In this document: one piece after another, positions 1,998-53,576 of the stretch
How the letters are laid out: each line of letters begins with the position of its first letter
Position numbering within the stretch: position 1 is the stretch's first letter
Assembly (NCBI RefSeq): GCF_963853765.1
Contig: NC_088853.1
Span: forward strand, 53,258,001 to 53,322,000
Direction: 5' to 3'
DNA from: Magallana gigas
Taxonomy: Eukaryota
Length of the DNA: 64,000 bases
Translations under genes and position numbers: made by a program
The notes under the pieces: generated by a model
Databases searched by the model: none
Told to the model about the DNA's origin: nothing
What the model saw: the letters and a program-made list of their open reading frames with translations, nothing else

Positions 1998-3049
1998 ATG
2001 GAATCCTTAAGCAAACAAGGGAGATTGAGTATTAATGGAAAATCTCTTTTTAGAGACATGAGAAATGCGGTGATATGCGACTTGGTTAATGGCGGTGCTT
2101 CAGTGGGGGATTTCAAATTTCCTCGTGGTTTAGGCGCAAATTTAGCAAAAAAGTGTAAAATTTCAAAATCGACTGTTTCAAATCTCTGGGCGAAATATAA
2201 TAAAACTTTTCCATTGCTCCTCGTAAATCAATGAACACAAAAGATCGGAAAATTGGAAATGAAGATCGTGAATTTATCAAGGCATTAAAAAACGAGAGAC
2301 CTTCTATTCAACTTCAAACAATTCGAAATGAATTGCTCAAACATTCCAACACAATTACAAGCATCAGTATTTCAACAATTAGCAAAACCATTCGAAAAGA
2401 TCTGTCAATGACATTTAAAAAATTTGTCTCTTCAACAAAAACAGATTTACTTTACAAAATCTTCAGTATACCCAACAATTTTTGAATTATGTTTTTAACA
2501 AATATCCCTTCAGGCTGGAGTTCATGGACGAAATGGGAATACAATGTAAGACTTGCGGACGGCCAACCATTTTACGGTCATTCTGTATGGGATTCAAAGT
2601 GCGTAGAAATGACCCGATACAGCAGGACTCCTAATTATACAGTTAACTATTTAGTAGGCATTACGGGTGTTAAATATGTTAATATTCTTGATGGGCCATC
2701 AGACACCACACAATACGTTGATTTTGTGGGTGAAGCGGTCAATAGCTTCACAGACGATGGGGAGAGGGCTATCCAGGGGGGTGACGTGCTAGCGGTAGAT
2801 AATGCCCCTATACACCACCATGCCGCAGAGAGGATTTTAAGGAACTGGCTTTCCACAATTGGAGCAGAATACTTGTTCCTACCAACTTATTCCCCGGATC
2901 TAAACCCAGCAGTACAATGTTTTCGAAAAGTGAAAACTTTCCTTAAAAATGATTGGTACAAAGTGAGAATTAGTGACAACTTTAAAATGGCTGTAATTAA
3001 ACATTCGGGGAAATCACTATTTCTGACAAAATGTCTTTTACGCAACTGA
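1998..3049 (+). pseudogene. IS630/Tc1-mariner superfamily transposase pseudogene (HTH plus DDE, D37E spacing with catalytic E read as V)
   Basis: Three consecutive ORF pieces; HTH-like LAKKCKISKSTVSNLW; VDNAPIHH...LFLPTYSPDLNPAV; 37 residues between D and the E position; 3' end abuts the AGTAGT terminus at 3058. Confidence 0.85.
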
Positions 3050-3318
3050 GGTGTGTAAGTAGTATAAGACGCCTCGATAGGGAGGGGGGGGGTCAACTGA
3101 GTGTACTTTTGGGGTCAAATTCAAAATGGAGGTCAAAATAAGGTAAAACAAGACAGTATAGAGAGAAAACAATTTTATTGAATGAAAACATGCAATTAGA
3201 ACGAAACAATAATGAATAGCTGAATGAAAACAGTTAAAGTTAAAAAACGTATTTACATTGAAGAAATAATCCTTTTCTTTCACGGTTTATCTAGTACATT
3301 CAGCGATCGTTAGAAAAG

Positions 3319-4387
3319 ATGTCTTCGTTTATTCCTGTTAGTGTCAGTTACCCACTCCTGTTCATCCGCCAAGTCCTGGAACTCTGGGACTACCAGTGAA
3401 ATGCGCCCCAGCAGACGTACGAGAGAGTGAGTTTTCGTGCTCTCCATATGACGGAGTCTGAGGAGAATCCTGTGGACAGTTTTGAGGTTGGGGAGTTTTT
3501 TACCACCAAGGCCGATTTTAGTCGGGAAGCTGCAACCCAACGTTCAGAGAAGATTGGTTCCTCCTCCTAGACCGCCGCCGCCTAACTTCAACAGACGAGG
3601 AGCCAGCCCAGAGTCACCGGCCAGCCCTGATGGTTCGGAGCCTTATTCTCTGACGGACAGCCCCACTAAACAAACTGCACCATCGCCTCCTCCGTACTCG
3701 CCCAATAGGTTACAGTGTGACAGATCCCTGTATGTGACAATGCAAGACTATCAATTTGCCTTGCCTATGGACTGCCCTGACGATCGACCACCCAGAACAC
3801 CAGAACCATTTTCAGTGGCGAATCCCCCTCTGCAGCCCGCTCCAGAGCTCCATGCCAGGATTCGGAGGAGAGCTCCACCCCCTCCCAGATCCGTAGGACG
3901 AGGAGCTGATCGGAGGGAACCGTACGCCAGACCTCCCATTCCCTCTGAGAAGTCGGCGTTTGTCCGTCCGCGACCCTTACCTTTTGGACGAGCCAGAAAT
4001 CTGTTCGCAGATTTCATCCCGATTATCGAGTCGCCTCCCTCTCCACCGCCCATGGTAAGGACGTTTCCTGGGCCTCCTAAAACCCCTTCAACGCCACTTC
4101 GTCCTCCTTCCTGATCGCCATCCCCAGAATCAGATATTTTCCTGGAGCTGTACCAGCACAGCCGGCACCCCGTAGATGCCAGGAGCCATTTAACGATCAT
4201 CCCGAGTTGGAGCAGAAAAGCTGAGAAAGAAGAGAGAGGGGAATGTGTAATATGCTATGGGGAAAAAGAACACCTGCAAGTCCAGTGTCAGAACTGTGGG
4301 ACGATGACAGTTTGTTGTGTCTGTGTTGTAGGGGTCTACCAGAGTATCAATTCCTGCCCGATGTGTCCATTCCGGGGGGAGTTTTAG
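3319..4387 (+). pseudogene. Pro-rich protein with C-terminal RING-like C4C4 zinc finger (Maverick accessory gene, disrupted)
   Basis: ATG 3319, in-frame TGA, and a frameshift into ORF 3482-4114; reading through TGA 4112 gives CVIC-x10-CQNC-x5-CCVC-x10-CPMC ending at TAG 4385-4387. Confidence 0.65.
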
Positions 4388-4447
4388 GGAGAGCCCAGCA
4401 GTCCAAGGCAGCTAAAGGCTAAGTCCATCTAGCCGAGAAAAACCAAC

Positions 4448-4486
4448 GGCCCTTTTCAGGGCCTCCCATATTTTACGAAAAGATGC
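4448..4486 (+). terminator. Histone-type mRNA 3' stem-loop plus histone downstream element
   Basis: AACCAAC-GGCCCT TTTC AGGGCC (4448-4463), TCCCA, then GAAAAGATGC (4477-4486); 60 nt after the RING stop codon. Confidence 0.85.
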
Positions 4487-4551
4487 TATTTATTATAATG
4501 CAAATAGAAATCAAATATGAAACACCAGTCACACTTCCCTCATACACCAAC

Positions 4552-5181
4552 ATGTATTCTTAAGAGTTACTCTCTCCCTTTCAATTAAAACACGAATTTA
4601 CTATGGTCGTAGCGGGTCCTTCTAAATCGGGGAAAAGAGAATTTGTAAAAAAGGTAATATTAAATAAGCATTGGATCTCCCCTCCCCCGGAGAGAATTGT
4701 TTGGTGTTATCGAGAATGGCAACCGGCCTACGAAAGTTTACGGGGTGAAGTTTAGTATATTCGCGATATACCAGAAAACGAGGAGGAATTAGTAAGTGAT
4801 GTCAGCATTCGTCACCATTTAATTTTTGATGATATGATGGGAGGGAAAGCCATCGTCGATTGGTTTACTCGCAAAGCTCATCACTGTAACACCAGTCTGA
4901 TTTACATTACTCAAAATGTGTTTGATCGAGCCGTCCAACACCGGACGATTAGTTTGAATACTCATTACATGGTTTTGTTTAAAAATCCCAGAGACAAATC
5001 TCAAATCACCGTTTTGAGTCGACAAATAAATATGCCTAATTTAATGTCTGTCTATTTAGATGCTACTCGCATCCCTCACGGATATATGTTAGTGGATTTA
5101 AGTCCACAGACTCCCGACGAATTGAGATTGAGAAGTCAAATGTTTGAGAATTTAGTGGTGTATATGCCACGAAAAATATAA
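4552..5181 (+). pseudogene. Maverick packaging ATPase (FtsK/HerA, A32-like), disrupted
   Basis: MYS*ELLSPFQLKHEFTMVVAGPSKSGK (Walker A), LIFDD (Walker B), HH.N.S.IYITQN; in-frame stops. Confidence 0.9.
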
Positions 5182-5224
5182 ATAAAGGTGATGTACGATT
5201 TACATCATTTTGACTTGGAACACC

Positions 5225-5749
5225 ATGGCAAGACAAAAGAAAATTTTGAGACTCCTGAAACTTTTGCAGGGAGAAAAAGATCCAGTAAAGAGACAAGAGA
5301 CCATCGAGTTAAGTCGTAAGACTTTATTGAAATGGTTTCTCATTGGTGCAAAGAATTTGCTGAACGGGACTATTCCTATCGATAAGCAAACTCAACGTTT
5401 TATCGATAAACATTGAGAAGATGATGATAATAGATTAAAAGCGATCTTGAAACGAGGAGGAGCTGGATTTTTAGGAGGGGCGATCATTCGTCACTTGTTG
5501 AAATGGAATCTGAGTAAAGAGAGAATTGCTCAACCTAAAAAGCGTAAATCAAAGAAAATAACGCAGAAATTAAATATAAAAGATTTTGTAAAAACCCCTC
5601 CCCTAAGGAAAGACTTACCTGATTGGGTTCAGGAGCAAGTAGATTTATATCGACAAGATCAAACAGGTCAAAATCAAGATCTCATTGATCAGATAGATCA
5701 ATATCAAGAGGTAGCCCCTCCTGAGCCAAAGAAAAAGAAAAGGGGTTAG
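5225..5749 (+). pseudogene. Homolog of Maverick ORF 45511-46398, disrupted
   Basis: LKWFLIGAKNLLNGTIPIDKQTQRFIDKH and ILKRGGAGFLGG.IIRHLLKWNL are nearly identical to the copy B protein. Confidence 0.75.
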
Positions 5750-8700
5750 AGAGAGATTTTCTCCTGACTTACCTGCTGCCTCTACGCCTAAGCGTAGACC
5801 CTCTGAAATTAAAGAAGAAAGCAAAAACGCGGGGGTGTTAAGTAAGCATATGGACAATTAAGCGTCATATTTTGACTCTTATATTCAAAATCGTGAAATT
5901 AAATAATTATTTTAAATAAGATCAAAAACTTAGTATTATCCTTTAAAAAGATGTCAGTGCAATAAAATCGGGTAGTACATTACTGCCACATTGTTACATT
6001 ATCACGTGACAACTATAAATAGCTTACGTATGTTCCTTAACATAGAATGAGATAGAACAACACTACCCCGCGGTTTCCAAAATAAATAAGCATACCAAGT
6101 GAAAGCAAAACATCTCAGTTTAATCAAAACCGCTGCTAGAATCCTATGTTTGTCCTTATTAAAAAGTTATTTATCCGGTTCTAGTAAAACCTTCCCAACT
6201 TTTATGTTTGCACGGAAAACGGCAAATTGCATCAAAACAACACATAACATGGGATTCTAGCAGCACTTTTCAATTTAAGCATTGATCAAACTAACGATAA
6301 GGCCAGCATTTTTTTAAATTTCGATTTACAAACCCGCCGACTGTGTTTTTTAAAAAATGGGGAAAAAAATAAAAGACCTAAAGCTAGCTTTTATTTTTAT
6401 TTTTTCCGCCGATTTGAATTTTTTTTCTATGTAAGAATAAAAATATCGTATTTTAATGCATATCACGTTTAAGAAAATGGACCGAGGTGTTTCCGATCAT
6501 AAAAAACGTTGTGAAGGAAAAGGTCCGAGTTCCTCCGATCAAAAGCAGCATCAATAATTACGTAACATTTTTATGTGTACCAAAAGGTCAAAATGGCTGC
6601 TGCCAGCACTGGACATGTGCAATCATTTTTTAAGTTAAACTTTCGATGCATCGAAAACAAATACACATTTAACACAATTCGTGAAGCTAAGGAAGAGGAT
6701 ACAGTTGGCAACTTGATTAATACTGTCCTGGACACAGATTCAATTGACTGCATGATGATAGATCACGTTGTCAGCGGACTAACAGAGGACTCTGCCACAT
6801 TTCAAACATCCTTAAACACGCCAATAGAGGTTTTAAAACAATTCAACTTCAAAAGCATTATCGTGCATTTAGTAAAGAAAGGGAATGAGAGATCAGATGC
6901 AAAAAATCCTGTTAATGCTTTCCAAATCTTGATGGATGCAAGGAGACGCTATGACAAATACCCTCCTCTAAGGTACGTTATTTAATCATTTTCATTTAGT
7001 ACTTGGTTAATTAAAATCGCAATATATGCATAAAACTTTGATTGATAAATTAAATTGTATTAATGTAACGTGCTTATAAAAAACAAACACGTATTGTCGA
7101 ATGTATGTAGTACCGGTACATTGATCGTAAGAGAATGGATTTATGTACGAGCTGTTTATTTTTATTTTCCCTTTAAACCGAAAGTAGAAAATGTACATGT
7201 TTTATGTTGATTGTTCATTGAGGAAAACACGGAAAAAGACAGACTGTTTAATAATGTCATTGAGTCATTAAAGAAAAGAAAAGTTGGATTCTCTTCTCAC
7301 CAAATAGAAAACATTGGCAGGGATGTTGTTAACACAATAACAAACACCATGTGGTTTTTAGACCCATTCATTGACAAACTGAAGGATCGTAGTGTTAACA
7401 TCCCTGCCATGTTTAAGGAACTTACTGGATACAGAAACATAAAGAAACAACATCAAAAAGCTCCACAGGTACGTAACAGTTTTGAGGATATATGACTTAA
7501 TTAAAGTAAGCTTGCATAGTCCATCCACATGTTATTCTATAATTCATGATACTGTAATTATAATCCATATTATTGTATTATTAGTATAACAATGATACTT
7601 CATTTAAAATATTATTAAAAGTTTGTTTGCGTTTATGAATGTGTACAGTGTAATGATAGAGTTTTTTCTCATTTAAAAAAGAACCAATACACATTTATTT
7701 GAGTTTTTTACTCAAATAAATGTGTATTGGTTCTTTTTTAAATGAAAATGCAATGACTATTGAAATGTGAAAAAAGACAGAAAAAATTCATTGACTATAA
7801 TAAAATGATGATTAAACTTTACAATAAAAATTTCGTAAAATATATTTTACAGTTGGTGACCTCTGAACTAAAGGAAAAGACAGAAAACCTTGCAGAGCTT
7901 CTGCTTATTCCATGGATCTTGTGCAAGGATTTTGCATCATTCTACACAGCTGTCAAGGATCTTGTAACAGGCCTGCAGAAATACTTGTCATATATGTCTG
8001 GAATGAAGGAGAGAACTGCACAGAATCTAAGAAAATCAGAGCCTGTGAGAAGTTTTAAAGACAACTGGAGTCTCAAAAAAGTTGGAAAGGTGAAGGATGT
8101 GAAGGATGAATACAAGAAACTTGATGATTTTTTGAAGAACTTACACGGCAAAAGACTTGATCGACTTCGAACCAGAGGACAAAACTGAGCGAAGGAAGTG
8201 GTATGATAACTTGTACTTATCTTTTGACATTTCATTGTTTACCTACAGATATGGTAACTATCTGGGAAATGTGAATTTAGTGTGGAAAGTAAATGAAGAG
8301 GACACTCAGCAGTCGACATCTATGGAAATTGGGATTGTGAACAAAATAAGAGAAAGTATACCTAAATATGCTACAAGACAAATGCAGAAAGACTTTATTC
8401 TCAAATACCATAAGCATTCAGGGGGAAGTAAATCAATTTTGAGAAACATGTATCAATTTCTTACAGACTATGAGTACACACCTGAAAATAAGCAAACGGC
8501 ACAAATTGACCTGCGTACTAGTAAAATTTTACTGGAACTAGACGACACAGAGTTGATCTTTGATCTTCGTAAGAATAATGTGATCCCAGACTTGAGCCAT
8601 TCTGGAGTGAACTAGGGAAATTCTTGGATGAAAAGTCGGTGGTTCATGAAAGGAGGCATACAGACACCCAGTATATGCCCTTTGCTATGTCTGTAGAAGA

Positions 8701-9212
8701 CTTGCGAAACCAGATTATCAAACGCTTACCTGAAGGAACCCCAGCACCTTCGACTTCTTGGATTAGATTAAACTTTTGTCCTTCAAATCCGATGCACATT
8801 GCACAATTCTGCCCAAAATTATACAGGAAAATTCAACGTAAAGTTTGCGGTTCAACAAAGACTTCTGAGAGTCCAGCATGCTGACCTACCTTATGGAAAA
8901 CATCAGTTTTACTTATTAAAAGATTTTGCCTGCAAATGGAGAGACCATGTTGTTTTACAGAGCCTGGATGACAAAGCTATTGTTCCAATTGGTGAACCAG
9001 GGCAAGCAGTGTTAACTGGTGTCAGAGCACATCATGGAGGACTAGTTTCAGATCCTAGGCAAAACTTGGCCCTTGATCATGATTTCCATGTGGCTGGAAT
9101 TGTTCCAAGTGTTTGTTTTGTTGTTGATGTTCCAGTAAATAGGGTCTGTAAGTCTCGTCAGCTGACCAACGAGATTTGACGAGATTATTAACTTCCGGGT
9201 ACCTCGAGCGAT

Positions 9213-12200
9213 ATGGCGTTATCGATATTGTATTGGGCAAACTATGTCGAGGGTTTAACAAAGATTAAAAGGAAAAGTGAAGCTGCAGTTGAGTCTCAGA
9301 GGGTTCTCCGTTTCGCGTTTGACGAGTTGCGTGTCATTACTGCCAATGTTCAAGCATCAATGAGGGACACATCATACAAAGTTCAGGTGCGTTGTTGATT
9401 TGTTACTCACGTATAGGCTTATTCTCTTTTGAGAAGTGGACAGGCATAGCCTACATCTTAAAAGAGAATTAGTATAGGCTTTAACATATCTTTTACTCTT
9501 TTGATAAAAAAAATCATTAACATTTCGAAAGATTGCTCCTTAAATGATGTAATCATACTTGAAAACAAAACAAACCATTTTTCTAACGTTATCGTAAATG
9601 CATAAACAAATCTGCAAGCAAGCACAGACATACCTATATATCTGATTATTGGATAATTCTATTGTAGCACACGTGTATGATTAGATTGTGTGTATGAATT
9701 ACAACAGATTGAGAAAGATTAAATTTTTCGTCTGTTGACAAGTGTAGGTACATGTACATGTATTGTATCTCTTTTTAATGTTATAATGCATTGCAATAGA
9801 TATTCCTTGAATCTGAAGATAACGGTGTGGTGGAGTCATCATCATGCGAGTGTCCTATGGGGAGGTATAAGTGTCATCATGTGGCAGCAACTCTCCTTTA
9901 TGGGCAAGTGTTCTGGTATATCAATATATTATTGTAAAATGTGGTTAATGTTTGAAAATCATTGGACAATCTGTTCACTTTTGATCATGTGTATTAGATG
10001 TCAACTCAAGTTAGTAAATAATGAGTGAAAATTCTTCAGATATCATTATAAAATGCAACATGCATTTCTCATAATTGCTGTATATTCAGTTGTTTTTCCA
10101 TCAAATATTTTTTACCATAATTCTTTATAAATTGCAGATATAAGAAGGCAAGCAAAACCGACATAAAATGCAGTTGGTTAAAACATCCAAAGTCAGCACA
10201 GCCAAAGATGACAACAACCATGGAGGAATTATTTCCACCAAAACAACCAGGATACAGGTACATGTAGTTTTTTTTTATTTTCAAAGCAATGTTTCAACAA
10301 AAAATACTTGATTTAAGTAAAAATTGTGGATATTTATATATCTAATATCACACACACACTTATAGAGCCTTAAAACGTGTGGTGACGGATGAAGACCGAT
10401 TATATTTTTATAATCAACTTAGCCAATTAGGCAGATTTACAGGTTCTCCCAGTTCATGTTCAATTTCTTCCCTTTTAATATGTTCTCACGTTGGATGTAT
10501 TCATTGTCTTTTTTTTTTATAACTTGATTTGTTGGGGGGGGGGGGTGTTGACTTTTTTTTTTTTTTCAGATTTATCATTATAAGATACTTTTTTGTGTAT
10601 CTGGAATTTTGATATTAAATGTACTTTGATATTAGTGTTATTTTTTGGTTGTATTAAGCCATGGCTGTTATAACAATTTACTAAAAATGAATCAGACAAG
10701 CATATTTGTATTGACACAAATGCTTGCAGTATATTTAATTTCAATATTTGTAATGTCAAATGTCAACGAACAAAAACCGAAGGTTCTTATTTAACAATAT
10801 TCTCATAAGTTAATGCCAAGCAGAAACATGCACTTTGTGAATTTTATTTCAGACCAAAATATTTCTGATTTAATTTATTTGTACAGCAATGCACTGGATT
10901 CTGTCAAAAGAACCCACAACTGAAGATAGTCCTGTTGTCTTGATACAAGAACTATTTCAAAGTAAAGATTTCTTGGATGCTGAATGCAAGGAATCCTTTT
11001 TAAGGCATGTTTAAACCTAATATTTTGACAGCACTTTTATATTGCACTGTATCAATAATATTCTAATCAAGCCCATGATACATATATCAGCTTTTTCCCT
11101 TAAATATATCTTCTAACAGAATCACTATCTAATTAAAAACCATGATTATAGGGAGAAGCTTTCAATGTCCCCAGAGCAAATTATCCAGACTGCATGGACC
11201 ACAATAGGGCAGAGGGAAAATACCTTGTGGGCCAAAGTTCGCAAGCTGCGTTTCACAGCATCCAATTTTGGACAGATTGTTGCAGCTGTTCGAAAAAACA
11301 GGTATGATTTTCAAAAAACCTCATTAGTAAAGATGCATTACTAAATATTTAAAGATACTTAGTTTAAAGATATCAGTTTTTCTGAATTTTTAAAATCACA
11401 CACTATTGAGAATATGATGTAAATTCTTCAACAGTAGCCCTGAACATATTTGAAAAAGCCATATATCTTACTTCGATGATTTCTTCATTTTAATGATCTA
11501 CTTGAAAAAAATAAAAATAAAATTGACACCATATTGTGCTATTCAATAAATGATAAAACTACAGTAGCTTTATTTTATTTTAGAGTATGTTTTTTAAAAT
11601 AACAAGATTTAGATCATTTCAAAATATTTTAGGTTAAACATGTCCTTGAAAAAAAGACTACTGAGTGCATACAACTTGGAAAAAAAGAGCACCAATCCAA
11701 TGGGGACTTGCCCATGAGAAGACTGCAATACAAGAATACTGCAAGGTCTTTGAAGTGAATGTTTTAGAGACAGGTAATTTTTTTTTAAGGATTTAATAGT
11801 TTATTGAGTTTGTTTGAAATTGTCATTATATTTGTGCAATTATAAATTGTTAAAAAATATGTTAAAACATTATTTACCATTAATTCTAGATAACCTAATT
11901 ATTGACGACAATCCCCGCCTTTATATGTTTAAGACACATCATCTAAAAGTACTAAAAACTAAATACAGCACTGCATGCAATTCCTTTAATAATTTGAATA
12001 ACCATTATTAAATATTGTTGTAGGAATTTGGCTTCATGAGTCTGGGCTACTTGGAGCCTCTCCAGATGGCTTTGTTCAAGGAAATCCAAAGAACATCACT
12101 GAACGAGTCCATCAACAAGAAAAGAACTCAACATTGCTGTCACCTGACATTGTTGAGGTGAAATGTCCATTTTCTGCCAGATCAATGACAATCAAAGAAG

Positions 12201-13065: not shown

Positions 13066-15421
13066 CTACTGAATAGGTTCTTCAATGTCATACTTTTCTG
13101 CAATCTCTTTCAAAAGGGGAGCCTGTAAATTAACAAGGGCCACACAAAGTTGAAATATTTTAGTGGATAGGTGTCTATACTGTGACGGAATATGGCTCAG
13201 AATTTCAAAGTTCTTTATTCTTTCATTTGCCCGCTCCACATGGATTCTGCTTCTGCCTATTTTATAGCACAGTTGAGCTTCTTCCTTAGTGAAATGTGAT
13301 TTGCTAGTGAGGAAAGGCGGGATATTTAGGGTGACACCATTTGGAAGTTTGTCAAAAATGTTGAATCCTTTGTCAGCCAGGATCATATCACCAGCTTGCA
13401 GCTTCTCTAATATGCCACAATGGTCCACTATTGCGGAGTCTGAGGTTGATCCAGGATAAAGATCGGAACAGAACACAAGAGCAGCATTAGGTGCAACACA
13501 AGTTAAAGCCTTTACTGTGTGGTGACTCTTGTAGTTACTGTATGCCAGTGACTGGCTATTCATATCTGTTGGGATGTCTTGTGTCACTTCTGTGGCGTCC
13601 ATTGCAATTCTAGCCGATGAAAATTCTTCAAATGACTTTGGCATGGATCCTTGGCATTTCAGTTGACTTGGTATTCCGACAGCTTTCATGACCCCTTCAA
13701 ACAAAATTTCATGCAGGGCATGCACAAATGTGTTGATAATATTGGACACAGTAGCACGACTAGTGTTGAACCTCTCTGCTAAATCAAGGTCCCTGCAGTT
13801 GAGTCGTAACTTCATTAATGTCATCAACAACTGATCGCTGACACTAAAGTTCACCACAGTCCAACCACCATAATAATTGAACGGGCCCATTCTCTCCACG
13901 AGGTTCTCCAAAATGTAAAAGGTATCTGCAGAAAATGATGTATACAGCAGCATCTGTACAAAAAGAAACCAACAACAACAATCACATTTATGTTATTAAA
14001 ATACTGTTGAATAAAGTTTTCAAATATGCAAGCCAATAAGGAAATCTTTATACATGTACTGCAAAAATCTATAGTTTTCATTGTAACATACCTTTTCAGG
14101 GTCATTAATTATGTTCCCAATTGTCATGGACGGTTTTTTAAGCTTCAGCATGTTAATTTCTTGCTGCAACTTTACTAATTCCTCTTCCATATGTTTAAGG
14201 GATGCTGGAAGAATAACAACTGTTTACAATATATAAAGTCCCTAGTATACATGTTTATAAATATACAAACACATAGAAACACTTTGCTTGGAAGCATAAA
14301 AACACCGATAAAGGAGTATCACATTTTCTGTTTAATGTAAAAGTACTAAACGTATATATACATTGTACATGCATTTGTATCTGGTTGTGTTAACACATTT
14401 TACACCATGTCGGTACCTTTATTATGTTGAGGACTTCAAGTTGCATACTCGTGATCATGAAGTACAGTTATGCTGTCTGGTACAGTAATATTGGAATTGG
14501 CCTCAACTTCAGCCTCAGCTCCCACATCTATGTTTGAAGCAGATATTTCCTCTACAGCAGGTTTCATAATTTTGCGTCTATGAAGAAATAAGAGACTAGC
14601 ATATTACATGATCTGCCTTTTCACTTGATGCTGCTATAGTATTGCATTTTCTTCTTGTGAATTTTCAGTAAAATATTTTTTTAATGCACGCACCAGTATG
14701 TAAAATGAATGTTCAATCAGATCATTATAAACATACAATATTCATGTGCATATTCATTGTAGATGGATAACCTGCATGTACTTAAATCTGACATTATATC
14801 TTCACATTTATCTTTTGCATTACAGTTTACATGTAAACATGTTTTATAAATACATATAATATATGATAACACAATCTGTCTCCTAAATGTAATCATACAT
14901 GTATGTAGTATAACTGGTAATGAAATATTTGTATTTTGTGGAACTGCGGATTTTCTGATACCTTTTTGGTATGGCTACATCTGGAAAACATCCAAAGTTT
15001 TTACTATAACTGAATATAGTTGGTCCATTCTCTTTCTTGCCATCGAGAAAATGGCAGCTGCAAATCCTGTCATTTGGATTATAATCTCTGTCTGCTCTCC
15101 TAAAATTACGTGTTTTAACGATAAGTAAAATGTTTAGGCTCAAGTATTCTTAATTGTGCATTAAACTCAAATGAAATCTTTAATCAATCATTTATTTAAA
15201 CCTTTTAATCAATTTAATAGGGTTTTTTTGTTCGGTAGTTTTGACCTGTTGACGTCTGCAACTCTCTTTGACTTTTCAGATATATATTTTGTTATGATTA
15301 CTTACCTACATCGTTCAACCCATCGTTTCCTTTCCCTGACGTCGGTCGGAAATCGGTATAAATTGCACTGCAACTTTTTACCGGTCTTGTGTGTGCAACC
15401 GATGGCAAAACAATATACCAT
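13066..15421 (-). CDS. THAP-HTH-DDE_Tnp_4 transposase of ISL2EU (spliced)
   Basis: Exon 1 [11 protein letters not shown]...LYRFPTD..ERKRW and exon 2 RICSCHF (THAP); ORF 13066-13953 has [23 protein letters not shown] and [12 protein letters not shown]. Confidence 0.9.
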
Positions 15422-24460: not shown

Positions 24461-25804
24461 CAGTCATTGGACAAAAGTATTCGTCGGTGACGTCAAAATG
24501 GCGGCGATTTGTTTACATTAACTACTCAATAAAAACTACTCTCCTGATTTTAATATTCGTTGTCTTACCTTAATATTTTGTGAGATTGCCCTTCATTTTA
24601 ATAACTTCTAGAAGACGGGTTAGAATTGTGGCATACAGCTGACGAACATATTCTACCGATAGGTTTTGCCAGAATCGCGTCACTTCCGCGATCAGCTGGT
24701 CTTTAGACTCGATGGTGTTTCTTGTAGATTGCAGGCGTCTTTTAAGTTTCAACCAAATATTCTCAATGATATTGATATCGGGAGACCGAGCTGGCCATGA
24801 TGTAGTGTTTATATTATTTTCTTCCATATATGCACTGAGTAATCGGGATCTATGAACGGGGGCATTGTCATCTTGAAACACATAATTTCCATGAGGAAAA
24901 TGTCGAACAATAACGGGCCACAAATTGTTTTCTAATATATCAATATATTTTTCGGAGTTGATATTACCATTTACACTGGTCAATGTTCCAACACCATCGT
25001 AACAAATACAACCCCATATCATAACAGACAGTTTGCTCTTCGATGGCGCGCACACGAGATGGGGGTTGTCAACTTCATCGGTCTTTCGCCAGATATATAC
25101 ACGGTTGTTATCACCTATTACTACCTGACATTCATCACTGAATACCCAGTTCGTCCAGTGATCATCAACAGTCCAGTTTTTTCTTTCTCTGCACCACGAG
25201 ACGCGTTTTTTCCTGTTACATACTCTGACGATCATCTTCTTTTTCTGCACCCGTCTATTATATCCCATTTTAAATAATTTTCTCCTGACAGTCTTTGAAC
25301 AGAAAGTAGAATCCTTTGCATTATTTATTTCACTCGTTATGTCATCCAGTGTCCCTCTCCTGTTACTTTTCATGATTCTTGAAAGTTGGACTTCATCGCG
25401 CACGGAGAACTTCGGCTTCCGCCCAGATCGATGCCTGTTTTCCACACTTCCATGAACTTCAAATTTTTTAATAATACTAACAATAGTAGTCCTAGGTATT
25501 CCCAACAACCTCCCAATTTCTGCCTTCTCCGTCTTGTAAGCTTCTATAACTTTCATTCTTACTGCCACCGGAATTTCCTCTAACTTACGAGGGGGCATTT
25601 TCCCAAGCTTTGTTTATGGATTATTTTGACAGCCGACAAAAATTGTAAACTCTGACGTTATCTAAAAACTATGACGTATTTATGGGAAGAAATTCCGAAC
25701 CCGACGTGCTTTCTATAAATAGCACGATACAAAAATAGCCGCGACGAATTTACAACATCAAAGGCATTTTGACGCCAGCAACGAATACTTTTGTCCAATG
25801 ACTG
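24461..25804 (-). mobile_element. Full-length Tc1-family transposon (1344 bp)
   Basis: TA-flanked; ~40-bp TIR whose first 24 bp CAGTCATTGGACAAAAGTATTCGT are identical at both ends. Confidence 0.95.
24570..25598 (-). CDS. Tc1 transposase, DD34E, uninterrupted 342 aa
   Basis: HTH GIPRTTIVSIIKKF, GRKPK linker, VFSDE, FQDDNAPVH, WPARSPDINIIE; 34 residues between D and E. Confidence 0.95.
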   Translation of the reverse strand: MPPRKLEEIPVAVRMKVIEAYKTEKAEIGRLLGIPRTTIVSIIKKFEVHGSVENRHRSGRKPKFSVRDEVQLSRIMKSNRRGTLDDITSEINNAKDSTFCSKTVRRKLFKMGYNRRVQKKKMIVRVCNRKKRVSWCRERKNWTVDDHWTNWVFSDECQVVIGDNNRVYIWRKTDEVDNPHLVCAPSKSKLSVMIWGCICYDGVGTLTSVNGNINSEKYIDILENNLWPVIVRHFPHGNYVFQDDNAPVHRSRLLSAYMEENNINTTSWPARSPDINIIENIWLKLKRRLQSTRNTIESKDQLIAEVTRFWQNLSVEYVRQLYATILTRLLEVIKMKGNLTKY

Positions 25805-39205: not shown

Positions 39206-39666
39206 AAATTTACTTATCAAGAAATTACCGGTCAGCAATGATGTCAATATATTATTTTGGTACTATCTTTCCTTGTGCAGGTTTGAGTATTGTTCCCATA
39301 TATTTCACCATATTAGACTGTCAGAATGTTAAAAATTACATATAAGTCAAAGTTAATGTAGGATTTGTCAGTTTTCCTAGTCCAAGTAATTTCCAATTTT
39401 TTATTTGTATGGAACGCCATTCTTGTCATCAACAGTATATGTGTGAATTTATAGGACAGCTGTTAAATAAGATGTTGTTCTTTTGTAGCTTTTTACCTGG
39501 TTTATTAAAAAAAATCATGAAACGAATAAACTAGTTGAAAACTTTCTGTCACAGAGACAGAACAGTAAAAAGATTGTAACGACTTGGACAAGGAGATTCA
39601 CATTTTGGCGTCTATGACGTAACGGCGTTCGTCGATAATTGGATCCGATGTCTTATACAAGTTAAA

Positions 39667-39740
39667 AGTAGTATAAGCCGCCTCGCTGGCCGGGTCAACT
39701 GAGTGCACTTTTCAGAGTTGACCCGGCCAGCGATGCGGCT
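39667..39740. repeat. Maverick left terminus with 25-bp-arm hairpin
   Basis: AGTAGT 39667-39672; arms 39676-39700 and 39716-39740 with one mismatch; 15-nt loop. Confidence 0.85.
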
Positions 39741-40009
39741 GAAAATCTAGCTCCCTGAGATTTTAAGCTAATAATGCGGGGTGACCAATCTAAAGTAAGC
39801 ACTTGATCGATGTTTATAGTTGGCGCATCATAGATCCCGATTTATTCAATGATTTTTCCCTCCTTGCATAATGAAATAATAAAAAAGCGAATAAACAGTG
39901 AACATTGGTTTATTGAGAAATGTATGAAAATAAAAACAAGTATGAAATAACACTGAAACAATTCAAATTTACATGAAATAACACTGAAATAGTTCAATTA
40001 CACAAAAAG

Positions 40010-40636
40010 TCAAAATACTGTCACTTTTTCTTTGCGAGAGGTAATTATGGTATTATCTCTTTTCAGATTCGGTTTTCTAGGGCTCGAGGTTTTTTTCTTG
40101 TCACCGGCTGGTGGATTATTTTCTTTTTCAGGGCATTCGGAGGCCCAATGTCCAAGGTTTTGACAAATATAGCAGGGATCTTTGTCTTTGCTTTTTTTAG
40201 GAGGATCCTGCTTTTGTGGACATTCAGGTGCCCAATGCCCTAGTTCTCCGCAGATATAACAGGGATTTGTTTTCCTGGTCGGGATTTTTGATGTGACAGG
40301 TGTCGTATTCCTGGTCTCATTTTTTATTTCACCTACTTGTTCGCTTAGAGCCTGTAGATCATTGGTAATAATTTTCCTGGTTTCACTGATTTCGTTGGCG
40401 AGATTCATCAGATTGTTGATGCTCCCATCTAGGGTGGCCATGAGCAGAGCAAGATCTTCTTTAGTAGCTGGTTTTTCTTGATCCAAGCATGCCAGTTCAA
40501 GATCCGTTGCATCCTGCGATTCCGTGATAGACTGATAATAATTCATAGATTCCCTAAGTGTGGTAGGATGATTATAATTTAAACTGGCAGAGACAGGGTC
40601 TGGACTATCAAAGCGGTCTAGTTGTTTCTGCGCCAT
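40010..40636 (-). CDS. Coiled-coil protein with two CCHC zinc knuckles (Gag nucleocapsid-like)
   Basis: CYICGELGHWAPEC and CYICQNLGHWASEC (C-x2-C-x4-H-x4-C); upstream TATAAA near 40690; AATAAA downstream near 39910. Confidence 0.8.
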   Translation of the reverse strand: MAQKQLDRFDSPDPVSASLNYNHPTTLRESMNYYQSITESQDATDLELACLDQEKPATKEDLALLMATLDGSINNLMNLANEISETRKIITNDLQALSEQVGEIKNETRNTTPVTSKIPTRKTNPCYICGELGHWAPECPQKQDPPKKSKDKDPCYICQNLGHWASECPEKENNPPAGDKKKTSSPRKPNLKRDNTIITSRKEKVTVF

Positions 40637-40685
40637 GTCTGTTTAATGTCAGAGCAAGACTGAGGGAAAAAGCAGCGATGTGCTA

Positions 40686-41030
40686 CTTTATAAATCTTAT
40701 GCAGTCTTGTGCACGAGGCTCTAAAAATAGCAATTTTTTCTTAAAATAGCATTTTTGCTATATACTAAATAGATCCGATGCAATAGATATTTTAAAAATA
40801 GCACATTTCTAAAATTGGCTATCATTTTTTTCCATATTTGCTGCACGCGGCTCTAAAAATAGCTAATTTTTTCTTCTAAAATTAACAATTTTTTATCTTA
40901 TTAATAGATCCTATGCAATATCTAATTAAATAATGAAATAGCATATATATTGTTTAAAAAACAATTGTTTAAAATAGCATATATTCATTTCTAAAAATAA
41001 ATCTGTTTTCATTTCCCTTTATGTATAAAA
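40686..41030. promoter_or_regulatory. Divergent promoter region with two TATA boxes and repeated YTA(A/T)4TAR (MEF2-consensus) motifs
   Basis: TATA boxes near 40690 (minus) and 41024 (plus); CTAAAAATAG at 40721 and 40853, TTAAAAATAG 40792, CTAAAATTAA 40876, CTAAAAATAA 40991. Confidence 0.5.
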
Positions 41031-41066
41031 AGCGTGTTCGATCGAAGCACTTGAAGAGAATTGATC

Positions 41067-44000
41067 ATGACGCTCACATCTATTAAAAAGAGTCTTCTCC
41101 GCGAGCAACGCCGTTTGAGAGAATATCGATTGAAGCAAGAACGTTTAAAACTAAGAAAAGAAAACAACCAAATACTTCAGCATTTACGGCTTTTTAGAAG
41201 AAATCTTCAACGGAAAAAGAAATTGGCCCAAACGAGAGAAAAATCCAAGTACTATCAGATCAGACTGGATCGAGGTCGTCGTTCACGTAAATTTAAGGTC
41301 CAAGAAAATGTATACAATGTGAATTTTAAACCAATACCTCAGAAAGATCATTCTCCCTTCGTTCGGAATGTGATAAGTGAGATGTTAAACGAAGTAAAAG
41401 AACAAATGCGTTGTGACCCCGACGATTATTTGCGATTAAACATACGACACCCCTCCTTAGATTCTGACATTTGGTATGAATTTACTCAATGCAAGCATCT
41501 AAATGCTGAGGGATTACTCGCTAAAATAAAAGGGGTACAACAATCTAAAAGAGATTTCACCATGACGGACGGAGCTGTTCAGTTTGATTTTGTTCATGTC
41601 CAGTATCCTCAAGGAAGTGGTGGAAATAAGAAAAAACACCTATATACAAACAAGGAGAAATTCAAAAAAGGGAAAAAGTCCATTCTGAGTATTCAGAACA
41701 CAGATTCTTTATGTTTACCTCGCGCTATTGTAGTTGCTCGTCTACACAGTAAAAAACCACAGGACCCCGGAGCTTTTAACGCCTGGCAAAAACAATGGAA
41801 GCGGATACAAGAAGCCGATTGTAGAAGTGCAGTTCAAAAGAAACAAGCTCTAGAGCTGATGGAACTTGCCGGGTGTGATTCAACTCTATCTTCTTGTGGA
41901 CCTCTAGAGCAGGGGAATTTACAGGGGGTGTTGTACCCTGAATTCCGCTTGAAGATATTTCAATTCCAAGCAAACAGTTCTACATTAAAATTAGAGCCAA
42001 TATACAAGGGATATGGAAACGGCAAGTGCTTAAACGTGTTGTTAGATCAAGGGCATTATGATACTATACTCTCTATGCCTGGGATTAGTGAACACCAGTA
42101 TTACTGTGATGATTGTGATGTAGGATACAGCCACATTGAAGAACATCGTACCACTTGTCAATATTGCTGCTCTTTTTGTCTGAGCGAGACCCCCTGCCCC
42201 CCGGACGGCAGCTGCATCGAATGTTCCGAATGTCATGGTTTTTTTAAGAGCATGACATGTTACCAGAGTCACTTAAAACCGTACAGTTCTAAGACTAGCA
42301 CCACTGTTTGCAGTATGATGGATCGATGCCAGCACTGTCAGTCCTGGATGGCTAAAAAATTGTTAGCAAATCACAAATGTGGAGGCCAGAAAAAATGCAA
42401 GATCTGTAAGAAAATTGTTGACAAGGACCACCAATGTTACGTTCAGAAGAAACCCTAAAAGAAAAAGAAAAAAGACAAATTACAGCTGTACATTTATTTC
42501 GATTTCGAATGCACACAAGAACATGGTATTCATATCCCGAATTTATGTGTGGCCCATCGTGTCTGTCAACACTGCGATCACTTACCTGTTAACGAACCCT
42601 GTACCAATTGTCAGGCTTTAGGACCCCGTCAACATGTCTTTCGAGGACCAGATACCTTAAAACATTTTGTAGAGTGGCTATTACAACCTGAATGCAAGGT
42701 TAACAACGTATCACAGTTAGTGCACGAAGGGGCTATTGTTATCGCTCACAATTTTAAAGGGTATGACGGGCAATTTATCTTGAATTATATAGTTCACAAA
42801 GCCTGTATCAAACCCTCTGTCATCATGAACGGAAGTAAATATTATCTATGGAAATTTGTGGGGTAAAATTCATAGATTCTTACAACTTTTTGCCTTTTGC
42901 ATTGTCTAAAATGCCTTCTGCTTTCGGCTTCCGGGAACTAAAAAAAGGATATTTTCCTCATTTTTTCAATACCGAACGGAACCAGAATTATGTAGGAGTC
43001 TATCCCTCACCCGCTTTCTACAATCCAGACGACATGAGTACCTCGGGACGCAAAGCTTTCTACGCTTGGTATGAGAAACAGCAGGGAAATGTGTTTAATT
43101 TTCAAGAAGAATTCCTAGCCTATTGTATTTCAGATGTGGATATTTTAAGACCTTGTTGTGCTCAGTTTAGAACAACTATTCAAACCCTTGTCCGTGTGAA
43201 TCCTTTTCAAGAAGCTATAACCTTTGCCAGCACTGCAAATCTCGCTTACCGACGGAGTTTCATGCCTGAACACACCATAGCTATCATTCCTAATCTGGGA
43301 TACCATCCCGCTCGACAGTATTCCATTAAAGCATGTCGTTGGTTGGCCTGGGAGGGTCGGGAAAAGTCTATTCGACATGCCAAAAACGGAGGGGAGGTCA
43401 GACTCGGGAATTTTACAGTAGATGGCTACGATGAGGTCAACAACACTGTGTATGAATTCCACGGTTGTTACTGGCATGGCTGCCCTATATGTTATCCAGA
43501 TAGGGTCACAGACATTCATCCTCATCACTTTGATAGGACTTATGCTACAGTCTACGAGCAGACTCTACGACGGGAAAAAGCATTACGAGATGAAGGTTAC
43601 AATGTTGTCAGTATCTGGGAGCACGAATTTGACCAACAACTGAAAAACCAGGAAGAGTTACAGACATTTTTAGAGCATTTAGACTTTCAAGATCCTTTAA
43701 ATCCCCGAGATAGTTTGTACGGCGGTCGTACCAATGCTACTCGTTTGTTTTGTACAGAGGGAGATATGCGATATGTAGATGTTTGTTCTCTGTATCCTTA
43801 CGTTTTGAAATACAAACCTTTCCCCGTGGGCCACCCCGAAATCCTGACCGAAAATTTCGGAGATGTGAGATCTTACTTCGGACTGATCAAATGTCGCGTC
43901 TTACCCCCACATGGTCTGTATCATCCCGTCTTACCCTATCGCACAGGGGGTAAATTACTGTTTCCTTTATGTCGGACCTGTGCAAAACAACGATTGGCTC

Positions 44001-44807
44001 TAGACCCCGAGTACAGATGTCAACAATCGGATTCAGATCGGTGTCTGACGGGAACATGGGTAACCACAGAACTACAGAAAGCGGTTGAAATTTGATCACA
44101 TTTACGAAATCTGGCATTTCCCTCAAAGCAGTGAGACCTTGTTCAAAGCTTATATCGACACCTTTCTTAAAATCAATCAAGAAGCTTCAGGATTTCCACC
44201 CGACTGTGAAAGTAAAGAACAGAAACAAGCATACATACATGATATTTACCAAAGGGAAGGTATCATGTTAGATTTGCTAGAAGTCGAGAAAAACCCAGTC
44301 AAACGCACTATAGCTAAACTGTTTTTAAACTGTCTGTGGGGGAAATTCGCTCAAAGAATCCAGCTACCGAAATCTCGATACCTGACAGAGGAAGCAGAAT
44401 TTCAACAATTATTACAAGATACCAGCTTAGAGGTCAAAGGGGTAGAACTCTTACAAAATTTGGAGGATCCTAACTCTGACATGATATTGATCAATTATGA
44501 GGAGAAAAAAGAATTCGTGGAAGAATGTCCCTTTGGTAACGTGGTGTTAGCCTGTTTCACCACGGCTCATGCACGATTACATTTGTATGAGACATTGGAA
44601 AAACTGGGAGAACGTGTGTTATATTTCGATACAGACAGTATCATTTATCAACATGAACAGGGGGAGTTTAATCCTACAACTGTCAACAGTTTAGGAGGAT
44701 GGACTGATGAATTAGACGGGGGTCACATTATCAAGTTTATGTCAGGGGGCCCAAAGAATTATGCTTTTGAAATAGACTGTGGAAACATTGTTTCAACTGA
44801 AACATGA
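41067..44807 (+). pseudogene. polB: Protein-primed family B DNA polymerase (pPolB) with Cys-rich N-terminal region and endonuclease-like insert; disrupted and 3'-truncated
   Basis: YFDFEC, AHNFKGYD, FIDS.NF, VDGYD...YEFHGCYWHGC, YGGRT, YVDVCSLYP, KLFLNCLWGKF, YFDTDS, GGPKNY; stop at 42456, frameshifts ~42845 and ~44090. Confidence 0.95.
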
Positions 44808-45472
44808 ATTTACCATGGTGGTAGCAGGCCCTTCTAAGTCGGGAAAAACTGAATTTGTTAAAAAGCTAGTAGAAAATACTCATTGGATCTCCCCATCCCC
44901 CGAAAAAATCATCTGGTGTTATCGAGAATGGCAACCAGCCTACGAATCTCTTACAACATCGCGTAAAGTTTATACGCAATATTCCCGAAGATGATGAGAA
45001 ATTGGTAGCAGATATCGAGACTCGACACCTCTTAATTTTTGATGATATGATGGGAGGCAGGGCTATCGAATCTATTGTGGATTGGTTTACAAGAAAAGCC
45101 CATCATCGGAATACTAGTGTTATTTACATTACTCAAAATGTATTTGATCGAGCAGCTCAACATCGCACTATTAGTTTAAACGCTCATTATTTAGTCTTGT
45201 TTAAAAATCCTAGAGACAAGTCTCAAATTGTCGTGTTGAGTCGACAATTAGATATGCCACATTTAATCTCGGCCTATCATGATGCCACTCGAATACCCCA
45301 CGGGTACCTGATTGTGGATTTAAGCATGCCACATTTAATCTCGGCCTATCATGATGCCACTCGAATACCCCACGGGTACCTGATTGTGGATTTAAGCCCT
45401 CAGACCCCCGATGAATTACGCCTGAGAAGTCACATGTTTCAGACCCTTACAGTGTATATGCCTAGAGTATAA
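44790..45472 (+). pseudogene. Packaging ATPase (FtsK/HerA, A32-like), 5'-truncated and frameshifted
   Basis: GPSKSGKT, LLIFDD, HHRNTSVIYITQN; frameshift ~44960; 72-bp in-frame duplication at 45254-45397. Confidence 0.92.
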
Positions 45473-45510
45473 ATATTAGAGTTTACATATACCCAGAATC
45501 ATTTGAAATC

Positions 45511-46398
45511 ATGACTGGAAAGAAGTTACTACACACATTACGGCGCTTACAACATGAACGAGATCCTGAGAAACGCGCGGAAATTATTGAGCTGGGGCGA
45601 AAAGCCTTAATGAAATGGTTTTTAACCGGGGCTAAAAATTTATTGAAAGGAGTCATTCCTATCAATAAACAGACACAGCGTTTCATTGATAAACATCGTG
45701 AGGATTTAAGGGTCATTGCCAATAAAAAGGTCAATGATGATAATAGAATAAGAGCTATTCTGAAACGAGGTGGGGCTGGATTTATTGGAGGAGTCATCAT
45801 TCGTCATTTATTGAAATGGAATTTGGCCAAAGCCCGAACAGCTAAACCAAGAAAAAAAACCCAAGGACGACGACTCAAGAGTGTGATAGGAAAAGTACTC
45901 AATTCCAAGGCTCCTAAACTGAGACAGTTACCCCAGTGGATGGTAGACATAGGGAAGGTTTCCTCACGCAAAAGGAAAGCTCCTAGAAAAAAGAGATCTC
46001 CCAGGAAAACCTCTCGGAAAGGACAAAAACTGATTGTAAAACTTCCTCCAAGACAGAAAAAGCCTCCTGAACAAGTTCCTTTGACCCAGCCTTCCCCCAA
46101 TACCACATTAGCCATGGCTCAAATGAAAATGAATAGAGCGATGGCAGGGCCAATAGGGAGTCAAAGAACGCCTGATATTCAATCCAGTGTGTTTCCCAGA
46201 ATTAAAGTTCTTGTTCATCACATCCCGAGATATTCCTCATTGTTTAGTAAAGTGACAGGTTTCAGTCCGTTACAAGACCCAGATAAGAAGAACAAGAAAG
46301 GAAAATATGAATGTCGCTACTGTCCCATGGAATTTAAACTGAAAAAATCCAGAGATCAACACGAAAAAACTACTCATCTTGGCTATGCCCCTCCTTAA
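45511..46398 (+). CDS. Maverick protein with conserved NLLKG-type N-terminal domain, basic linker and C-terminal C2H2 zinc finger
   Basis: AKNLLKGVIP; Lys/Arg-rich middle; CRYC-x12-H-x4-H at the C-terminus. Confidence 0.8.
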   Translation: MTGKKLLHTLRRLQHERDPEKRAEIIELGRKALMKWFLTGAKNLLKGVIPINKQTQRFIDKHREDLRVIANKKVNDDNRIRAILKRGGAGFIGGVIIRHLLKWNLAKARTAKPRKKTQGRRLKSVIGKVLNSKAPKLRQLPQWMVDIGKVSSRKRKAPRKKRSPRKTSRKGQKLIVKLPPRQKKPPEQVPLTQPSPNTTLAMAQMKMNRAMAGPIGSQRTPDIQSSVFPRIKVLVHHIPRYSSLFSKVTGFSPLQDPDKKNKKGKYECRYCPMEFKLKKSRDQHEKTTHLGYAPP

Positions 46399-46449
46399 AA
46401 AAGTATAAAAACCCTCACAAGCTAGATATAGCTATCATTGTGAACAAAG

Positions 46450-46812
46450 ATGGGTTCAAACCAGAAGAAAAAGAAAAAGAACAAAGCCTGCAGTTGTGAA
46501 TCTCGACTAAAACCTCATTTACCGATATTACAATTATTATCGATGCCTAAATATTCATCAAAATTAAAAAATGACGTTTTAAAGCATTGTTCTAATGACT
46601 GTATTTTAAAGATTTGTGAGATTGCTTACAACCTCTTAAAAGGTAATGTACCACTAAAGTCGTCTCAGAAGATAAAACTCGCGCCTCAGAAACACATCTT
46701 GAGGCGCCTCGTTCAACCACAGTCAGTACAGAAACGCAGACGAACTTTATTATTGAATCAAAAAGGAGGTGTTTTCCCAGTCATTCCCCTAATCCTCAGT
46801 TTACTGTCTTGA
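46450..46812 (+). CDS. Conserved small Maverick protein ending in QKGG plus hydrophobic tail
   Basis: ICEIAYNLLKGNVPL...LRRL...LNQKGGVFPVIPLILSLLS. Confidence 0.8.
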   Translation: MGSNQKKKKKNKACSCESRLKPHLPILQLLSMPKYSSKLKNDVLKHCSNDCILKICEIAYNLLKGNVPLKSSQKIKLAPQKHILRRLVQPQSVQKRRRTLLLNQKGGVFPVIPLILSLLS

Positions 46813-46816
46813 AATC

Positions 46817-47635
46817 ATGAGTCGTAAAATGGTGTTAGTTCCGGAAGCAATGTTACTAGAATTGAAAGGTAAATTGCCTAAATCTCCCGAATTTCAAGCT
46901 ACCATTGGCTTAGGACATCAGTTAGACCATATTCAAGGGAGAGAAGATTTAAACCCAGAAGAAAAAGTAGCCCTCTATGGTCATCAATTACATCGTTATC
47001 GGAATTATTTACAACAAGCCCGTGATCAAGGAAAGGAGAGGACATTTACAACACCATTACCTAGCGCAGAAAAAGATAAAGAGGCAGTCGAAGATGATGG
47101 GGCTGCTGCTGATGTTGCTGCTGACCCAAGTTCCTCAGAACTAGAAGAACAGGTGATGAAAAGTGTAAGCAAACAGATGCAAAAGAGAGCAGGACTTCTA
47201 TTAGATCACCTCAAAAAAACTAAAGTCTTAAAATGGAACTCCGATGGAGAAATAAGTTATCGAGGAAAACGCATACCCCAGTCTAATATCGTTGATCTGG
47301 TAACTAATACAATGAGAACTAAATCCCGTAGAGCATTTCGCTCTCCGATCGGCATTGACGAATTTGCTCAAGCCTTGAAAGAAACCAATGTGCCGACGGA
47401 TTACCTACAGAATCCAAACATTATAAAAGCCATGCAAAAGCCTGGAAAAATCAGTACCCCTAAACCCCTTCAAGATGAAAAAGACGATAATGACGACGAT
47501 ACTGGGTTTCAGGAAGCTTTTACGTTTACTACACCACAAGCTTCTCCCTTCTTTATGACGCCAAAAGTATCAAAGACAGTAAAAAAGAGAGGAAACGCAC
47601 AAATCTTAAATTGGGATAAATTGGGCAAGAAATGA
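46817..47635 (+). CDS. Conserved Maverick hypothetical protein
   Basis: MSRKMVLVP start; LKWNSDGEISYRGKRIPQSNIVDLV block typical of Maverick core ORFs; uninterrupted 272 aa. Confidence 0.75.
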   Translation: MSRKMVLVPEAMLLELKGKLPKSPEFQATIGLGHQLDHIQGREDLNPEEKVALYGHQLHRYRNYLQQARDQGKERTFTTPLPSAEKDKEAVEDDGAAADVAADPSSSELEEQVMKSVSKQMQKRAGLLLDHLKKTKVLKWNSDGEISYRGKRIPQSNIVDLVTNTMRTKSRRAFRSPIGIDEFAQALKETNVPTDYLQNPNIIKAMQKPGKISTPKPLQDEKDDNDDDTGFQEAFTFTTPQASPFFMTPKVSKTVKKRGNAQILNWDKLGKK

Positions 47636-48735
47636 AGAAAAAGAAAAAAAAATTAGAAGACATATTACGAGAGATTTATTATGATCCTAAGACTGGATAT
47701 GGAGGCGTACAAGCCCTATACCGTCAAGTACGTGCTAAGGGGTATCCTATATCACTTACGGATATTAGAAAATGGTTAAAAGAACAAGAAACATATACTC
47801 TGCATAAACCCATTCGTCGGAAATTTAAGCGACAACAAACTCGAGTGACCGGTATCGATGAGCAATGGCAATTAGACTTAGCAGATGTATCACAGTTAAA
47901 GAAAGAGAACGAGGGTAATACCTTTTTACTGTGTGCTATCGATGTACTCTCAAAATATGCTTGGGTGGTGCCATTAAAGCAAAAAACTGGGAAGGAAATG
48001 ATACGAGGATTACAACAGATCAGTAAACAAGACGGGCGACAACCCGTTCGCATTCAGTCGGACAAGGGGAGGGAATTCACAAACAAGGAGTTTTTACGCG
48101 CTTTTAAATCCATTCATTTCTTTACCACTCGCAATGCAGAAACAAAAGCAAGTATCGTGGAGCGCTTTCAACGCACACTTAAAGCTCGCATGTGGAGATA
48201 TTTCACCCGTCATAAAACTCGCCGATATCTTGACATCTTACCGGATCTTGTGTTCGCCTACAATCACTCGTATCATCGCAGTATAAAAAGAGCTCCAGCT
48301 GATGTGAATGCCTCTAATGTATTACAAGTGTGGAAAAATCTGTATAAAAAAAATTCATCTACAACTTTCTATACTCCTAAATTTCACAAAGGTGACAGAG
48401 TGCGCATCAGTAAAGCTAAACGCACTTTTGAAAAGGGATATCTGCCTAACTGGACCAGAGAGTTATTTACGATTTCTCGTCGAGTCCAGGAAGCTGTTCC
48501 ATACAGATATAAAATACAAGACTCTCATGGAGAAGAATTAGAAGGAACATTTTACGAATCAGAAATGCAAAAAGTCATAAAAAAAGACGATGTATATGAA
48601 GTGGAGGAAATATTAGACTATAAAAAGCGGCGAGTAGGAAAAAAAATCATAACTGAAATCAAAGTGCGTTGGAAAGGATATCCTCCTAGCTTTGACTCAT
48701 GGATTCCTCAAACAGATCTCCTACTTCCCAAATGA
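47632..48735 (+). CDS. int: Retroviral-like (rve) integrase with C-terminal chromodomain, intact
   Basis: WQLDLAD, IDVLSKYAW, QSDKGREF, VERFQRTLK, GYLPNWT; YEVEEIL...VRWKGYPPSFDSWIP. Confidence 0.96.
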   Translation: MKKKKKKLEDILREIYYDPKTGYGGVQALYRQVRAKGYPISLTDIRKWLKEQETYTLHKPIRRKFKRQQTRVTGIDEQWQLDLADVSQLKKENEGNTFLLCAIDVLSKYAWVVPLKQKTGKEMIRGLQQISKQDGRQPVRIQSDKGREFTNKEFLRAFKSIHFFTTRNAETKASIVERFQRTLKARMWRYFTRHKTRRYLDILPDLVFAYNHSYHRSIKRAPADVNASNVLQVWKNLYKKNSSTTFYTPKFHKGDRVRISKAKRTFEKGYLPNWTRELFTISRRVQEAVPYRYKIQDSHGEELEGTFYESEMQKVIKKDDVYEVEEILDYKKRRVGKKIITEIKVRWKGYPPSFDSWIPQTDLLLPK

Positions 48736-48947
48736 GTGATCAATGGAAAATGTTTGGTGAAAAGATTCCTAGAGCTGAAATTGTGTATTTTGCTCAACTT
48801 CTGATCTGCCTGATATTAATAATCGCTTGTATCGTCATGTTAGTCTTACATGACTCTAATCGAGAATATTGGATGATTTGTCTTAGTTCCACCGTGGGTT
48901 ACATTATGCCCAGTCCTACTCTCCAACTCAAACCAGAATCTGCATGA
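48732..48947 (+). CDS. Small two-transmembrane-helix protein
   Basis: ATG overlaps the integrase TGA (ATGA); YFAQLLICLILIIACIVMLVL and YWMICLSSTVGYIMPSP. Confidence 0.7.
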   Translation: MSDQWKMFGEKIPRAEIVYFAQLLICLILIIACIVMLVLHDSNREYWMICLSSTVGYIMPSPTLQLKPESA

Positions 48948-53554: not shown

Positions 53555-53576
53555 AACGACAAAAAAAGACAAACTT

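Follow-up and report, generated by a model that had tools for sequence, protein, structure and literature searches.

Histone-type 3'-end motifs follow two unrelated non-histone genes of Maverick elements in an oyster genome

The mRNAs of metazoan replication-dependent histone genes end in a characteristic way. A short stem-loop (Rfam RF00032, Histone3) lies a few tens of nucleotides after the stop codon and is bound by SLBP, and a purine-rich histone downstream element (HDE) follows it and is recognized by the U7 snRNP. In textbook accounts, this pathway serves only histone mRNAs. A variation on the theme has been described for H2A.X, itself a histone, in which a stem-loop and a downstream poly(A) site are both used on one gene (PMC7807067). 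Maverick/Polinton elements and adintoviruses of animals are virus-like DNA elements, and no histone-type 3' signal is mentioned for them in the literature that we could search. Indeed, we found no paper pairing a histone stem-loop with Maverick or Polinton, and the description of adintoviruses contains neither "stem-loop" nor "polyadenylation" (PMC8502044). Here, we examined a 64-kb window of oyster DNA (Magallana gigas, GCF_963853765.1, NC_088853.1, positions 53,258,001 to 53,322,000), in which the original prediction had noted the same histone stem-loop and HDE behind different genes of two Maverick copies.

We first asked whether the motifs are present as described, and they are. At site A, positions 4443 to 4486 of the plus strand read CCAAC-GGCCCTTTTCAGGGCC-TCCCA, then 8 nt, then GAAAAGATGC. 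The stem-loop, with a 6-bp stem and the 4-nt loop TTTC, occupies 4448 to 4463, and the HDE-like 10-mer occupies 4477 to 4486, so that 13 nt separate them. At site B, on the minus strand, GGCCCTTTTAAGGGCC lies at 56200 to 56185 with a 6-bp stem and the loop TTTA, followed by the 3' flank ACCAG and, 12 nt after the stem, by the same 10-mer at 56172 to 56163. In dinucleotide-preserving shuffles, the 16-mer stem pattern with up to two mismatches is expected 0.06 times, but it is seen at exactly these two places, one of which is counted on both strands because it is nearly palindromic. The exact 10-mer likewise occurs only at these two places. A 55-nt block around the two sites is 82% identical, while the flanks are unrelated.

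Comparison with the Rfam Histone3 model further supported this assignment. Both sites match over all 46 model positions, including the A/C-rich 5' flank, GG..CC stem base, U-A top pair, UUUN loop, ACC(C)A 3' flank, and an A-rich stretch where the 10-mer lies. Site B (56159 to 56205, minus strand) scored 34.8 bits (E 2.3e-06), above the gathering score of 34, whereas site A (4443 to 4487, plus strand) scored 32.7 bits (E 6.7e-08 in a local search and 1.4e-05 in a whole-window search), 1.3 bits below it. This shortfall comes from the T in place of A as the first base after the stem, which the original prediction had correctly remarked upon; it is private to this decayed copy, and the orthologous site in a Crassostrea angulata Maverick (L009) scored 39.8 bits. 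A whole-window search at E<=1 returned no other Histone3 match. A long near-perfect palindrome at 7671 to 7743, probably a hairpin-forming repeat, gave weak sub-threshold Rfam matches on both strands. The hairpin is also the minimum-free-energy fold at both sites and in relatives.

To place the two sites in context, we annotated the surrounding DNA. Both lie in Maverick/Polinton copies. Copy B spans approximately 39670 to 57430, about 18 kb; its left end is set by a terminal segment shared with copy A, L009, and L012 (a second C. angulata copy) and by the end of homology with L001 (see below), and its right bound is a minimum. It carries a protein-primed type B DNA polymerase gene (42848 to 44807, plus strand; Pfam DNA_pol_B_2, E 3.8e-35 and 1.3e-09 on two overlapping open reading frames [ORFs]) broken by at least one frameshift, a packaging ATPase gene (44791 to 45472, plus strand) broken by one frameshift, and an integrase with an rve core (E 8.5e-10) and a chromodomain (Chromo, E 1.2e-08) at 47632 to 48735 on the plus strand, whose L009 homologue is 74% identical. 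A weak adenain-like protease match (Peptidase_C5, E 0.03) was below the cutoff. A CCHC zinc-knuckle ORF (40010 to 40636, minus strand; zf-CCHC, E 3.1e-15) lies inside the left end of copy B, pointing outward. Copy A (approximately 3054 to 5826) is a degraded fragment of a related lineage that holds the shared terminal segment, a RING-like gene, the stem-loop cassette, an A32/FtsK-type packaging ATPase gene (4552 to 5181, plus strand) broken by two in-frame stops, and part of the next gene. It is 85% identical over 1.6 kb to L009, with which it is colinear. The genes of L009 are in turn colinear with window positions 45 to 53.5 kb, and its intact ATPase, to which both window copies are homologous, matches Pox_A32 at 29.4 bits (cutoff, 22.8).

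The shared terminal segment (window 3054 to 3288 and 39663 to 39712; L009 7536 to 7777 and, inverted, 1432 to 1576; L012 7556 to 7799) starts at the same point in each copy and is probably the element's terminal repeat, although no inverted partner was found within the window. A repeat at 5828 to 6299 abuts the truncated end of copy A, and the same repeat (92% identical) sits as one nested insertion inside the RING-like gene of L009. Other transposons are also present, at 2489 to 3049 (plus strand), 24570 to 25598 (minus strand), and 13066 to 13953 (minus strand): two Tc1/mariner-type DDE_3 ORFs, one directly left of copy A, and a PIF/Harbinger-type DDE_Tnp_4 ORF.

The genes that precede the two stem-loops differ from those of the canonical pathway in that no histone domain was found in either upstream protein or its relatives. 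Site A follows a RING-like gene (3319 to 4387, plus strand) whose natural stop ends 60 nt before the stem. The gene is broken by one frameshift and two in-frame stops but covers the whole length of intact 358- to 360-amino-acid (aa) relatives. Proteins of this family, about 300 to 456 aa, have a conserved N-terminal domain, a proline-rich middle, and a C-terminal Cys/His-rich, zinc-finger-like domain; eight Cys/His positions are invariant or nearly so. The family is narrow, with 43 matches among 1.8 billion representative proteins. "RING" is only a weak label, since Pfam zf-RING_2 matches (E 0.007 for copy A, and 0.007 to 0.26 overall) are below the cutoff, a profile search of PDB sequences found no RING, and two AlphaFold models reached pLDDT values of only 45 and 52, too poor to search with. 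Site B follows a 130-codon Pro/Gln/Arg-rich ORF (56232 to 56624, minus strand) whose stop lies 31 nt before the stem; it belongs to another multicopy oyster family with no Pfam domain. Relatives of the upstream proteins include C. angulata LOC128172006 and LOC128174710 as well as C. gigas entries. The two families are unrelated (no BLASTP match; hhalign probability, 0.7%), so the original prediction was correct in referring to a different gene, and the cassette is therefore a portable 3' module and not part of one gene.

Interestingly, in both lineages the stem-loop gene follows an ORF resembling PP1 adaptors of the PPP1R15 (GADD34/CReP) and viral DP71L type. In L009 (8945 to 9664, plus strand) and L012 (about 8900 to 9680), this ORF precedes the RING-like gene, and in copy B a short, diverged 85-codon relative (57091 to 57348, minus strand) lies immediately upstream of the 130-codon ORF. 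A profile of the family matched PDB 9nb9_B, named Protein DP71L (E 4.6e-10), and PPP1R15B (E 1e-4) over the PP1-docking and eIF2alpha-recruiting stretch, while six of eight members matched Pfam PP1c_bdg weakly, below its cutoff (best E 4.4e-4). Such a protein would be a PP1 adaptor of the eIF2alpha-dephosphorylation type, suggesting that the element counteracts the host stress/translation shutoff response. Both lineages therefore carry the same module, a PP1 adaptor followed by either gene and then the stem-loop cassette, which appears to be undescribed. In A-type elements the module sits next to the terminal segment, in front of the ATPase, and in B-type elements it sits at the opposite end, in the opposite orientation; copy A itself lacks the PP1-adaptor ORF. 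Tandem repeats with a period of roughly 170 nt lie next to the module both in the window (57735 to 58360) and in an unrelated C. angulata locus (L012 12942 to 14152). The neighboring PPP1R15/DP71L-like gene makes it plausible, but does not demonstrate, that the stem-loop genes are regulatory, as the original prediction had proposed.

To determine whether the motif is placed after stop codons in other copies, we fetched loci encoding relatives of both proteins from other oyster assemblies. In 12 of 12 loci that extend far enough, a histone-type hairpin lies 25 to 63 nt after the natural stop, in the sense orientation. Eight of these belong to the RING-like family (the window copy, L009, L012, L010, L011, and L016, with a complete hairpin, and L015 and L017, in which the contig ends inside the hairpin) and four belong to the 130-codon family (the window copy, L006, L007, and L008). 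Two further loci, L013 and L014, stop short of the expected position. A strict hairpin scan of the window and all fetched loci found only sites behind these two gene families. L006, L009, L008, and L007 scored 40.8, 39.8, 37.0, and 34.1 bits, respectively, against Histone3, and every copy except that at site A has the ACC(C)A 3' flank. Intact genes also carry the cassette, as seen in ORFs of 276 to 456 aa in L010, L011, L015, L016, and L017. We considered whether contigs ending just after the hairpin (L010, L011, and L016) might represent RNA 3' ends. However, L015 and L017 end inside the hairpin and L006 to L008 read through it, a pattern that fits branching of short-read assembly graphs at a repeated 30- to 55-nt block. 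Scans of IMG/VR for the stem-loop plus 10-mer, or for the stem-loop with its 3' flank alone, gave no hits, nor did a scan of JGI metagenomes, and no relatives of the Maverick ATPase were found in IMG/VR.

We next compared conservation of the hairpin with that of its surroundings. Among the eight RING-like loci, the last 138 coding nucleotides are on average 62% identical and third codon positions 40% identical, whereas the stem-loop plus five 3' nucleotides is 95.6% identical (minimum, 90.5%). The spacer between stop and hairpin varies in length and cannot be aligned between subgroups. The only stem change seen, in L007, is C to T, which keeps a G-U pair, and the 10-mer is identical in six of the seven sequences that reach it, including L009 and L012, and differs at one base in L006. 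Because the stem hardly varies, there is no compensatory covariation, and the structural claim rests on conservation and on the fit to the Rfam model. One could imagine that the cassette is an inert relic of a host histone gene 3' flank that was once captured by a Maverick ancestor and simply copied along. Given that the hairpin is of the ordinary metazoan histone type, a host origin is likely in any scenario. Nevertheless, we consider an inert relic very unlikely, since near-identity of the hairpin contrasts with saturated synonymous sites and unalignable spacers in copies whose proteins are only 45 to 55% identical, and since its presence behind intact ORFs, with canonical flanks in every copy except the decayed one, argues for continuing selection.

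The conserved block could instead work at the DNA level, as part of the control region of the next gene or as a hairpin-prone joint at which accessory-gene modules are exchanged or deleted. In A-type elements, the block ends about 115 nt before the ATPase start and runs into an AT-rich, TATA-like stretch, and the block shared by the two contexts extends about 15 nt beyond the 10-mer, so another function could be superimposed. In addition, L001 to L005, the same sequence from five sequencing runs, represent a large internal-deletion derivative of the B-type element that has one end of the deletion within the cassette. Compared with window positions 39693 to 40186 and 56184 to 57429, this derivative keeps the PP1-adaptor ORF and the 130-codon gene and joins them to the 3' part of the CCHC gene and the left terminus; its stem-loop is incomplete and the downstream element is gone. 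We regard this explanation as unlikely, however, because in B-type elements no gene follows in that orientation, and because the conserved features are those specific to the histone RNA hairpin (loop bases, flanks, and an orientation always sense to the upstream ORF), which a DNA hairpin or promoter would not need. The noncoding stretch after stem-loop B (55830 to 56100, minus strand) contains a duplicated unit of about 130 nt that, in L006 and L007, is well conserved even though the 130-codon protein is only 39 to 47% identical, so that here the noncoding DNA is better conserved than the coding DNA.

A further possibility is that the hairpin binds SLBP, or acts as a general RNA stability or translation element, while the 3' end is made by ordinary polyadenylation farther downstream, or that both pathways are used, as for H2A.X. 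In that case the 10-mer would not be a U7 target. Consistent with this, a single ATTAAA lies about 197 nt after the stop at site A. Neither stem-loop gene, however, has an AATAAA or ATTAAA hexamer within about 195 nt after its stop, and site B has none within 200 nt, whereas the PP1-adaptor and CCHC genes, which have no stem-loop, are followed by such hexamers. With a background rate of 0.4 per 200 nt in this AT-rich DNA, these counts are too noisy to carry weight. The 10-mer and its spacing are conserved across two gene contexts and three or more divergent copies in each, and we consider exclusive or dual polyadenylation improbable, although complementarity of the 10-mer to the host U7 snRNA remains untested.

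Taken together, every sequence-level part of the original prediction held up, and we favor, with moderate confidence and from sequence alone, the interpretation that the cassette is a genuine histone-type 3'-end signal used by oyster Mavericks on accessory, non-histone genes. Under this inferred mechanism, transcripts of the RING-like gene (A-type elements) or of the 130-codon gene (B-type elements) would be bound at the hairpin by host SLBP, U7 snRNP would pair with the downstream element, and the transcript would be cut a few nucleotides after the stem and end without a poly(A) tail. In the absence of RNA evidence, SLBP binding, U7 pairing, and cleavage are inferred, and the 10-mer is an HDE by position, purine-rich composition, and conservation only. 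Site A, moreover, sits behind a broken gene, and the restriction of SLBP/U7 processing to histone mRNAs in textbook accounts sets the prior against new clients.

If real, a conserved, correctly placed stem-loop and downstream element behind two unrelated genes of an endogenous virus-like element would be an unexpected expansion of this pathway's clients, and would offer a sequence signature for finding such genes in other genomes. It would give these elements a very compact terminator directly in front of the next gene, and would tie the amount and translation of these proteins to host SLBP availability, that is, to S phase and possibly to oocytes and early embryos. We judge it about as likely as not that oyster Mavericks have recruited the SLBP/U7 pathway in this way, which would make them its first virus-like-element clients. 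Expression of host-manipulating proteins would then be gated to host DNA replication or to SLBP-rich oocytes and embryos, which is where a germline-invading DNA element needs to act.
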